From the NCBI GenBank assembly GCA_002269645.1, contig NIVC01001601.1:1-64000 (forward strand): a stretch of 64,000 nucleotides of DNA, given 5' to 3'. The position numbers and the translations under genes were made by a program. Position 1 is the first letter of the stretch. Every line of letters begins with the position of its first letter. This document shows, one piece after another, positions 28,901 to 44,834 of this stretch. Below the pieces are notes generated by a model, which was not told where the DNA came from, made no database searches, and saw nothing but the letters and a program-made list of their open reading frames with translations. Origin of the DNA: Macrostomum lignano (Eukaryota).

Positions 28901-31900
28901 AAATTACCCTTGGTTAATGATAGACACGGGAAGACAAGAGAATAGGCAATTGCAAGCATACTAAGTAGATAGATGCAGGTGCATAAAACAGATTGGTATT
29001 GTTAGCTGCAGATATGCAGGTAGATGTAGATAGAAAGGTAGATAGGTAGGTAGATGTAGTCGCTAGATATAATGGTAGCTATGGGTACTCGTGAGCAGAT
29101 AGGTGGGTAGGTAGGTAGGTAGGTAGGTAGGTAGGTAGGTAGGTAGGTAGGTAGGTAGGTAGGTAGGTAGGTAGGTAGGTAGGTAGATAGGTAGGTAGGT
29201 AGATAGATGATAGATAGATAGATAGATAGATAGATAGATAGATAGATAGATAGATAGATAGATAGATAGATAGATAGATAGATAGATAGATAGATAGATA
29301 GATAGATAGATAGATAGATAGATAGATAGATAGATAGATAGATAGATAGATAGATAGATAGATAGATAGATAGATAGATAAATAGAGAATTCTGGCAGCC
29401 AATTAGCTAGCAGACAGGCAGCAGCAGCCAGAGCCTGTGGCCAGAAATATGAGCACACTGGCCATCGCTAACCCGCTATGCGAAGCGCATTCCTCACGTG
29501 GCACTCGGCCCCACACAGCCACCCATTGAGCGATCTACGCACAAAACTCGGCAGTGCAGTCGCTCCAAACAGAATGGCAGAATGGCATATTCTCTCGCCT
29601 ATAGCGCCTACGGTCGCCATGGCAACTGCAACTTATTATATATGGGTTTGACAGCTATGCGCTACTATGAGCTGCACTTGAGCTACTGGGCTAGGAAGTC
29701 TACGCCAACCCCCCTGAGACTGGGTGGCGAGCGGGACAGGCAGGTAGTGCTGGCTACCTGAGCTTAGGGGTCTATTAATTTGTCTCTTTCAACTCTGCCT
29801 CCGAGTCTGTCAGCACGGCTCTCACAGCAGGTGATGCGGAGATAGTTACACCCATCTAGACCTCGGTCTCAGTCTCATTCTCTTTCTCTCTCAGCTCTGT
29901 TTTAGAAAGCAATCTCTTCTTCGTGCCGATGAAGAAGCGAGCCGAGGTGTGTTTGAGAGGCTGTAGAGGCCAGCCGATGCCAGTGGAAGCGCAAAGTGGC
30001 TTCAAACTAACAAAAATAACAGCAGAGACGTTTGTGCCGAGAAAAATTGTTAATTAACTTTTGCCGAGACCCTGCCTCTTCAGGGGTAATCTGATATCTA
30101 GTTCTCGAGTCAGTTGATGCGGTTTAAACTGGGCTCAGTTCGCAGTTTGAGTAGAAAATTTATTATAGTACAGCTCAGCGACAGGAAACGTTAGGAGCAA
30201 AATGCAGATCTGTTTTTTGTAAACTTTCCAGTGATTTCCTTTTCATTTTTTTTTCAAAAGTACAATTTTGGTAGGTAGGTAGGTAGGTAGGTAGGTAGGT
30301 AGGTAGGTAGGTAGGTAGGTAAGTAGGTAGGTAAGTAGGCAGGTAGGTAGGTAAATAGATAGGTAGGTAGGTAGGTAGTTGGTAGGTAGGTAGGTAAGTA
30401 GGTAGGTAGGTAGGCAGGCAGTTAGGTAGGTAGGTAGATAGGTAGGTAGGTAGGTAGGTAGGTAGGTAGGTAAGTAGGTAGGTAGGTAAGCAGGTAGTTA
30501 GGTAGGTAGGTAGATAGGTAGGTAGGTAGGTAGGTAAGTAAGTAGGTAGGTAGGTAGGTAGGTAAGCAGGTAGTTAGGTAGGTAGGTAGATAGGTAGGTA
30601 GGTAGGTAGGTAGGTAAGTAAGTAGGTAGGTAGGTAGGCAGGTAGTTAGGTAGGTAGGTAGATAGGTAGGTAGGTAGGTAGGTAAGTAAGTAGGTAGGTA
30701 GGTAGGTAGGTAAGCAGGTAGTTAGGTAGGTAGGTAGATAGGTAGGTAGGTAGGTAGGTAGGTAAGTAAGTAGGTAGGTAGGTAGGCAGGTAGTTAGGTA
30801 GGTAGGTAGGTAAGTAGGTAGGTAGGTAGGTAGGTAGATAGGTAGGTAGGTAGGTAAGTAGGTAGTTAGGTAGGTAAGTAGGTACGTAGGTAGCCAGGTA
30901 GGTAGGTAGGTAGATAGGTAGGTAGATAAGTAGGTAGGTAGGTAGGTAGGTATGTAGGTTTTCTTTTCAGACTACGGAATCCTCACAAAATGCGTCAAAA
31001 GTGCATGGCGGGAGTAAAAAGTATTAGTAATTTCTAGTACATCTAAGTTCAACCAGAAGACTCAACTCAATATTAATTAATACAGCCCAAAAAACATACA
31101 TCTCATCTGATGAGTAGGGCTCACCTTTTTGCTCTCGAGAAAGCTGAGCGCAGTTCGAACATTGCTGAGGCAGTGCACTCGCTGCATGACTTTTCTCGAC
31201 TCGTGCGGCAGCTTCTGGCCAGACAGCACCTCCAGCAGCAGCAGCAGCTTGATGCCGTCCTTGACCTCGGGGAACAAGTCGGCAATCTTGCAGGGCGGCT
31301 GGCACTGGATGAGGTAGGTGTTGATCCAGTTGGTGAAGGTCTTCTTCTGGACTCGCTCCTGCTCATCTGCGCGAGTTGAGTGAGGAGTTAAAGTCAGTGC
31401 GGCATCAAACGCTCGAAGGGAAGCCGTCAGTCGCTTTCGGAACCGCTTCATAATTGAAGCTTCCGCCAGAAATTCTACACTGTATGGCCGAGCTTCCGTT
31501 CAAAGTCTTTGTTCTAATATATAAGAAATCTGCCCAATTGTGCCATAGCCAGTGACTCAATCAATGCAGAGCTCGCCAGACCAAGTCAATAAAGCGGCCA
31601 CGCTAATGAAGCCGGGACTGGAAGACTGGCTTCAATAATGCGGGGCTGCTGAAGAAGCCAAGGTCAAGGCAGGCTATGGATCTCTCCCCGCTCTTCCCCT
31701 CGGTTCCATTTATAACCCAGCCTAACCCGCAGGATTCCTTCGCTGTACCAGGCAATATTTTTTCTCTTTTGCCAAACGTGCGCGCAGATGCGCAGAGAAC
31801 CGCCCCCCCCCCCCTAGCAACAAGGCTGGCTGACTTTCAATGCAGCATCCCGAATAGCAGATGGGGACAGCAGCTTCAGCGGGTTTAGGGGGGAAGCACG

Positions 31901-44834: not shown

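Follow-up and report, generated by a model that had tools for sequence, protein, structure and literature searches.

In plectin, twelve first exons splice into a common exon 2 (PMC8468861). Their products differ only in a short N-terminal extension, and both tissue specificity and targeting are proven for the twelve exons. Plectin, however, is a plakin that links intermediate filaments and not a nesprin. Within the nesprin family itself, Drosophila Msp300, the fly orthologue of nesprin-1, has four transcription start sites, at exons 1, 3, 18 and 21; the first two of these precede the CH-coding exons and give rise to two classes of CH-containing isoforms (PMC8616381). Mammalian nesprin isoforms vary at both the 5′ and the 3′ end, where multiple alternatives are used in a tissue-specific way (PMC3388047). 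The actin-binding domains of mammalian SYNE1 and SYNE2 are orthologous to the one considered here (about 55% identity), and the mammalian 5′ variants described mostly begin inside the rod, without the CH domains. Dystrophin with its brain, muscle and Purkinje promoters, utrophin A and B, and isoforms 1–3 of MACF1 and dystonin combine unique first exons of a few residues with a common CH1-opening exon, which in these genes opens CH1 just before the ..VQKKTF helix. They are other members of the spectrin superfamily, linked to the present case through the structural relation of their actin-binding domains.

Here, we analysed a stretch of 64,000 nucleotides of the flatworm Macrostomum lignano (contig NIVC01001601.1, positions 1 to 64,000, hereafter the window), in which a sequence-only reading had pointed to a plectin-like array of first exons in front of a nesprin actin-binding domain. 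We conclude that the exon with which the actin-binding domain of this gene begins is joined by at least two, and probably at least four, interchangeable first exons that each bring an ATG.

RESULTS

The locus is the 5′ end of a nesprin-type gene

Judged by its predicted domains and protein matches, the minus strand of the window carries the 5′ end of a nesprin-1/Msp300-type gene. The deposited protein PAA66447.1 (P0124) contains two CH stretches (Pfam CH, E 1e-41), whose exons could be placed on the window, and directly after the actin-binding domain the family PF25034 Spectrin_SYNE1 ('Nesprin-1, spectrin repeats', E 1.2e-57); PF00435 spectrin repeats occur in five stretches, and long exons coding for coiled, Ala/Glu/Arg-rich sequence continue down to window position 1. 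The assembled actin-binding domain is 100% identical to a UniProt protein of M. lignano, and the next matches, nesprin-1/SYNE1/Msp300 proteins at 50–63% identity, come from molluscs, other flatworms, arthropods and vertebrates. The protein collection that we searched holds no closer Macrostomum species, and the best match outside M. lignano stands at 63% identity. Among the search matches, those closest in other phyla, together with Schistosoma 'Nesprin-1', were vertebrate nesprin-1/SYNE1 and arthropod Msp300, and not spectrin, plakin or dystrophin; the domain is nearer to those of nesprins (..TNWIN..) than to those of spectraplakins. The sequence-only reading had called the gene a nesprin and its host an invertebrate, and both attributions hold.

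Membership in the spectraplakins (MACF1/Shot/VAB-10) was considered and set aside: their GAR (Gas2-related) microtubule-binding domain was not found in the data, which end before the C-terminus of the gene. Pfam likewise found no KASH domain in PAA66447.1; the retrieved models (1646 and 1949 residues) are incomplete, and the 3′ end of the gene lies beyond the window. UniProt labels three rod fragments of this nesprin gene 'GAR domain-containing protein'. A Pfam search of P0121 returned no family whatever, which leaves the 'GAR domain' naming of the rod fragments unsupported.

Upstream, the last coding exon of a neighbour on the same strand, a morgue-like F-box/UBC E2 gene, lies at 47819..48112 (minus strand). 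Its stop at 47819 bounds the nesprin 5′ region at 16.4 kb, from the end of this neighbour (47.8 kb) to the first actin-binding-domain exon (31366).

Four candidate first exons and one CH1-opening exon

The common CH1 exon (31125..31366, minus strand) is entered in phase 1. It starts at 31366 with AT GAG CAG GAG CGA GTC CAG AAG AAG ACC TTC and ends with AAA AAG|GTGAGC (encoded end ...SFLESKK). Because it opens with AT, one base of the upstream exon is needed to finish the codon. The shared acceptor (31367..31400, minus strand) consists of a pyrimidine-rich tract, ...CTCCTCACTCAACTCGCGCAG|, that is ...ctcgcgcag| before AT GAG CAG; ahead of 31366 it reads ...CTCAACTCGCGCAG|. An exact spliced walk of PAA66447.1 along the window begins at 32209, matches the first roughly 697 residues of the model and places the second CH1 exon at 28413..28505, the CH2 exon at 26139..26460 and the exon closing the actin-binding domain at 24873..24979, all on the minus strand. 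An ATG at 31451 in the last intron, covered by the open reading frame 31499-31080, reads in frame straight into D-EQERVQ and might, speculatively, serve as an unspliced start (31367..31451, minus strand); no gene model uses it.

Upstream of this acceptor, all four of the mini-exons proposed from the sequence are present on the minus strand. Each is open, starts with an ATG and ends with an Arg codon followed by G|GT, in phase 1 and joining 31366, i.e. at the sequence level four exons with their own start codon join one CH1-opening exon in compatible phase and lead into the same CH1 peptide. The most distal, c1 (44654..44831), is separated by about 3 kb from the stop of the neighbouring gene upstream and comprises 59 codons plus G, ending ..TTG AGA G|GTAAGT (donor GAG|GTAAGT; peptide end ...GGKTASLR, hence SLR). 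The exon as proposed stands, but not its start: position 44834 is an in-frame TTG, and the ATG is at 44831. The shortest, c2 (42199..42232), has 11 codons plus G and ends ..TTA AGA G|GTAAGG (donor GAG|GTAAGG; RLR). It makes the weakest case of the four: it is very short, an upstream ATG (ATGATATGA) overlaps it, and no gene model uses it. Exon c3 (38104..38206; 34 codons plus G) ends ..TAC AGA G|GTGAGT (donor GAG|GTGAGT; FYR), and c4 (32164..32209; 15 codons plus G), the most proximal of the four, ends ..CTA CGA G|GTAAAA (donor GAG|GTAAAA; NLR). A possible fifth first exon, c5 (34188..34248, minus strand), is an ATG-started phase-1 reading frame with a peptide of 20 codons plus G and the donor AAG|GTAAGC; it was not among the exons of the sequence-only reading, it is speculative, no gene model contains it, and its peptide ends in P-E, unlike the hydrophobic-Arg endings of the other exons.

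The shared ending is unlikely to arise by chance

How easily does such a pattern arise in 16.4 kb of sequence? The bare pattern is cheap: 61 donors in the 5′ region are preceded by an ATG-initiated, phase-1 reading frame ending in G|GT, so that the candidates have to be set apart by donor quality. We therefore scored all donors on the minus strand between 31367 and 47800 with a generic metazoan matrix of approximate frequencies, at a cut-off of 6 bits. Only five donors reached it: c1 (7.7 bits, the top score of the region), c3 (7.6), the c5 donor at 34188 (6.9), a site in a GTGA microsatellite (6.7) and c2 (6.4). The donors GTAAGT, GTAAGG and GTGAGT of c1, c2 and c3, which the sequence-only reading had called near-consensus, are all among these five. 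An ATG-initiated phase-1 reading frame precedes four of these five, and a hydrophobic-Arg end three of the five. No Arg ending at all was seen in control sequence, which comprised the entire plus strand of the window, with its 37 strong donors, and other stretches of the minus strand. When the region was simulated 2000 times with a first-order Markov model, 0.04 Arg-ending sites arose on average, and no simulation reached three or more (0/2000). The judgement that the convergent ending is unlikely by chance is thereby upheld.

The donor score predicts imperfectly at this gene, as the validated c4 has a poor donor (about 2.2 bits, calculated by hand with the same matrix) and is backed by an annotated model. 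The confirmed internal donors of the nesprin gene are all GTGAG; those of c1 and c2 are GTAAG. A DNA pattern, YTRMGAGGTRA, with 6 matches against 0.5 expected, was dropped as a test because it had been derived from the candidates themselves.

Two further features recur. The motif RRx[ST] is found near the N-terminus of c1 (RRFSL), c3 (RRESS) and c4 (RRQSF), three occurrences against 0.08 expected in 119 residues from the six-frame background density, for a pattern defined after seeing the data. A TATAW element lies 146–168 nt upstream of the ATG of c1, c3, c4 and c5, where the region as a whole has 2.7 per kb; this comparison, too, is post hoc. As features shared among the putative first exons, both patterns are only suggestive.

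Public gene models use two of the first exons

Exon c3 is the N-terminus of the UniProt entry A0A1I8HKJ9 (P0001, 253 aa), 100% identical and running ...ALFYR-DEQERVQ, and c4 is the N-terminus of GenBank PAA66447.1 / BOX15_Mlig015905g1 (1646 aa). For the GenBank annotation of the M. lignano genome, RNA-seq data were assembled with StringTie, TACO and TBONE, and the set was pruned, e.g. by dropping alternative transcripts with an identical coding sequence (PMC5730564). The c4 exon therefore rests on transcripts, through an RNA-seq-guided model; c3 rests on the UniProt model. We infer, beyond what PMC5730564 itself states, that the pruning may account for the single N-terminus deposited per copy.

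Our first protein search, which included the c1 peptide, returned only the c3 model and missed the 1646-residue model, and a long query was then added. With the c1-peptide query, the long query and the cluster members, the c3 and c4 models were recovered, and the N-termini of c1 and c2 were absent from the protein collection. Gene listings for two other genomic copies of the locus held none in the c1–c2 interval. The proposed diversity of N-termini is borne out by independent public models for c3 and c4; c1 and c2 occur in no model or transcript found.

Genomic copies keep the exons intact

The Mlig_3_7 assembly is redundant (PMC5730564), and we compared the window with two other copies of the locus in it, NIVC01001557.1 (L001 and L004) and NIVC01000160.1 (L002 and L003). 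The former shows 1.5–3.5% substitutions in aligned blocks, and the latter is nearly identical to the window. In both copies c1–c4 and c5 are intact, with identical peptides. No difference was found in c1 (0/178) or c3 (0/103), and the only changes in c1–c4 across the copies are two synonymous ones in Leu codons, TTA>TTG in c2 and CTA>CTG in c4; c5 has one synonymous change. In an empirical window test on the copies no exon, not even CH1, could be separated from intron (p 0.13–0.7), divergence being low and patchy. The comparison is consistent with functional exons and does not amount to evidence for function.

An old intron and a predicted helix at the junction

Why do the endings agree? From all retrieved nesprin-like relatives we extracted the residues that precede ..EQE.VQK(K/R)TF and obtained 111 distinct N-terminal junctions. 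Leu occupies position −2 in 48 of the 111; at position −1, 28 junctions have Gln and 21 have Arg. The endings of c1 and c2 thus agree with a standard that is independent of the window. In 87 of the 111, the split codon stands for D, Y, N or H, all of them encoded by NAY codons, as a phase-1 split after the first base predicts. A bird nesprin-1-like gene reads ...TAC TGG CAG G|gtaagt and then ...ttgtcag|AT GAG CAA GAG, i.e. it has the same phase-1 intron before (D)EQE.VQK, at the position found in the flatworm. Two recurrent vertebrate N-termini, ..NVMQRLQ|DEQE and ..GFFQYLR|DEQE, were examined as alternative exons and set aside, since their CH1 sequences differ too and they look like paralogous genes.

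In an AlphaFold2 model of the c3 isoform (mean pLDDT 87.8), residues 14–53 are predicted to form one unbroken helix that crosses the exon junction at residue 34/35, with a mean pLDDT of 91–92 over residues 21–40. If the helix is unbroken as modelled, the last residues of any first exon would join helix A of CH1, and this would constrain the end residues whatever the origin of the exon. A constraint common to nesprin relatives, made up of an ancient phase-1 intron and a helix extension, is a plausible and, on this model, the better explanation of the shared ending.

DISCUSSION

With a probability of roughly 0.7, we propose that the coding sequence of the M. lignano nesprin gene can begin in any one of several mutually exclusive first exons, each of which supplies an ATG and splices in phase 1 to one acceptor. 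Ahead of its GT donor, each would close with a hydrophobic residue, Arg and a single extra G; each would be spliced to 31366, and the resulting isoforms of the actin-binding domain would vary in nothing but an N-terminal extension of 11 to 59 residues. On this reading, an old phase-1 intron sits at the start of helix A of CH1, where the end of the upstream exon would continue the helix and would be constrained to a hydrophobic residue plus Arg or Gln. Each first exon may have its own promoter, and, as in plectin, the variable extensions may tune the location of the domain or its affinity for actin; the RRxS of c1, c3 and c4 could act as a phospho-switch and so provide a further layer of control. 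Taken exon by exon, we are highly confident of c4, confident of c3 and nearly as confident of c1, and lean towards accepting c2. Sequence statistics suggest that c1 is very likely, and c2 likely, used as an alternative first exon like c3 and c4.

The exons could also be used without four separate promoters, through mutually exclusive splicing from one or two shared starts or through spliced-leader trans-splicing, which we consider rather unlikely. Trans-splicing does occur in 38.8% of M. lignano genes (PMC5730564), and some 95 nt ahead of the ATG of c1 there is a sequence that resembles a good acceptor (ctgtttcag|). However, every exon brings its own ATG and has stop codons ahead of its reading frame, the TATAW elements at −146 to −168 of c1, c3, c4 and c5 would suit separate promoters within the limits of a post hoc pattern, and separate starts are used by the known analogues plectin and Msp300 (PMC8468861, PMC8616381).

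It is unlikely, too, that only the annotated c3 and c4 are real, with c1 and c2 as chance combinations of ATG, reading frame and donor in a repeat-rich 5′ intron/intergenic stretch. The protein searches speak for this reading, as they recovered the models of c3 and c4 and no protein or model with the N-termini of c1 or c2; so does the small size of c2 with its overlapping upstream ATG, and between-copy divergence does not mark c1 or c2 as constrained. Yet both exons are among the five strongest donors in 16.4 kb and have the right phase, an ATG and the Leu-Arg end that is the family consensus, and three Arg-ending sites were never reached in the simulations. In addition, c1 is an open frame of 59 codons that has RRxS in common with c3 and c4, and other 5′ forms may be concealed by the pruning of the GenBank set.

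Tandem duplication of one ancestral first exon, from which the shared ending would have been inherited and which had been suggested as the origin of the array, is improbable, for although three exons have similar endings (YTR MGA G|GTRA) and RRxS recurs in three, pairwise local alignments of the exons with 300 nt of upstream and 60 nt of downstream sequence were no better than shuffles for any pair (z <= 1.3), the exon lengths vary five-fold, and the ending is also found in distant species, where constraint explains it. This speaks against a recent duplication; an ancient one, eroded beyond recognition, is possible.

The array of mutually exclusive first exons may have a wider frame. The same position and phase of the intron in flatworm and bird, together with the Leu-(Gln/Arg) conserved upstream of it, lead us to a tentative idea, on balance a doubtful one: an ancient, perhaps bilaterian-wide phase-1 docking site immediately ahead of helix A of CH1 might time and again recruit modules of a promoter plus a first exon in nesprins, and perhaps in all actin-binding domains of the spectrin superfamily. 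The M. lignano modules would then be interchangeable helix extensions, three of them with a PKA-type RRxS, and promoter choice and phosphorylation would tune actin binding.

The comparison with plectin drawn in the sequence-only reading is apt, and the solved structures closest to the M. lignano domain include the actin-binding domain of plectin (3f7p, 4q57, 1mb8; E about 1e-51). Against the twelve exons of plectin, M. lignano has four to six candidates, with gene models behind two only; compared with Msp300, which has two upstream starts, M. lignano has four or more candidates. This layout has precedents in plectin, dystrophin and fly Msp300, and the M. lignano nesprin array is a further example, in a new phylum, that does not overturn current understanding.

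In summary, for M. lignano, a transgenic regeneration model, our analysis amends and enlarges the annotation of a giant gene of the cytoskeleton of which one N-terminus per copy is deposited, and it nominates four to six short candidate promoter regions that might serve as cell-type-specific reporter drivers. It contributes a flatworm example to the rule by which alternative first exons diversify the actin-binding domains in the spectrin superfamily, and it suggests a shared structural reason, in that an exon end lying within helix A, as modelled here, would explain why unrelated first exons end alike.

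Further possible starts and shared features of the first exons

Besides the alternative first coding exons c3 and c4 and the candidates c1 and c2, the 5' region contains a possible fifth first exon, c5 (34188-34248, minus strand), which encodes a 20-residue peptide followed by G. Its donor, GTAAGC, ranks third in strength within the 5' region, and the exon is unbroken in both of the other genomic copies of the locus; its peptide ends in P-E, unlike the hydrophobic-Arg ending of the other first exons. c5 was absent from the four exons listed by the sequence-only reading. A possible unspliced start was also found at 31367-31451 on the same strand, where an ATG at 31451 lies within the last intron before CH1. 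From this ATG, 31 residues remain open across the acceptor and run without a stop into D-EQERVQ, and thus an unspliced start just 5' of CH1 would likewise be in frame.

Most donors of the first exons differ from those used elsewhere in the gene. Of the internal donors confirmed for nesprin (window 15515-31125, minus strand), all seven read GTGAG (GTGAGC in four, GTGAGG in two and GTGAGA in one), in contrast to GTAAG or GTAAA in three of the four first exons. The peptides of c1, c3 and c4, i.e. three of the four, carry close to the N-terminus an RRx[ST] motif, a protein kinase A-type consensus, as RRFSL (44799-44785), RRESS (38194-38180) and RRQSF (32203-32189), respectively, all on the minus strand. 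The chance expectation is approximately 0.08 occurrences versus the three peptides observed, for a pattern that was picked post hoc.

Much of the 5' region is occupied by tandem arrays (44354-44613, 36691-38084, 39485-40072, 40593-41014, 45409-45987 and 46781-47658). One with a 21-bp unit begins 41 nt past the donor of c1 and one with a 63-bp unit 20 nt past that of c3, while the others comprise (CTAA)147 and units of 23, 17/26 and 25 bp. Similar satellites are found in the downstream introns, e.g. with a 45-bp periodicity at ~20.3-24 kb.

Upstream neighbour

The gene upstream of nesprin is of the morgue type, with an F-box and a ubiquitin-conjugating-enzyme domain (47819-48112 and 53520-54209, minus strand), and adjoins nesprin in all three genomic copies. 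Its match to M. lignano A0A1I8GCS3 is 100%, and it falls into one cluster of at least 90% identity with GenBank PAA66448.1. Its intron harbours a DIRS-like retroelement (48811-52219, minus strand), in which ORF 49803-51599 encodes a reverse transcriptase (Pfam RVT_1) and ORF 48811-49836 a tyrosine recombinase (Pfam Phage_integrase), both on the minus strand; a third ORF is also present. Because the morgue-like gene spans only 2.8-3.2 kb in both GenBank copies, this insertion appears to be particular to the window's copy.

Rod exons and gene models

The GenBank model PAA66447.1, which is RNA-seq-guided and carries the c4 N-terminus, goes from an exon at ~14.3 kb straight to exons past the window start (window 1-14300, minus strand; 25000-38750 of L001, a stretch of the copy on NIVC01001557.1). 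The ~13 kb left out contains very long open exons rich in Ala, Glu, Arg and Leu, including 7930-6011 (640 codons), 9969-8665 and 5523-4471 (minus strand), which are present only in UniProt fragments, e.g. A0A1I8H5T5. The skipped stretch may represent a block of exons of a giant isoform, or the annotations may conflict. Three rod fragments of the gene (A0A1I8H5T5, A0A1I8H1A2 and A0A1I8GBG1) are labelled 'GAR domain-containing protein'; a Pfam scan of the first of the three returned zero domains, and the label looks like a low-complexity sequence artefact. Furthermore, PAA66447.1 and P0241, the GenBank model from the copy on NIVC01000160.1, diverge past ..KPKLLEQ, where one of them has an extra IEDAQSK ahead of V(Q/E)AAKQAAEQ. 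Such a difference points to a small exon that is alternatively spliced, or to an alternative splice site, right after the actin-binding domain.

Putative core promoters

TATAW motifs lie on the minus strand at ~44996, ~38361, ~34394 and ~32377, i.e. at -165, -155, -146 and -168 nt from the ATGs of c1, c3, c5 and c4, respectively, with an additional TATAAAT at -111 for c1; the TATAW background across the region is 2.7 per kb. These motifs, a pattern recognized post hoc, may be a sign of separate core promoters for c1, c3, c4 and c5.
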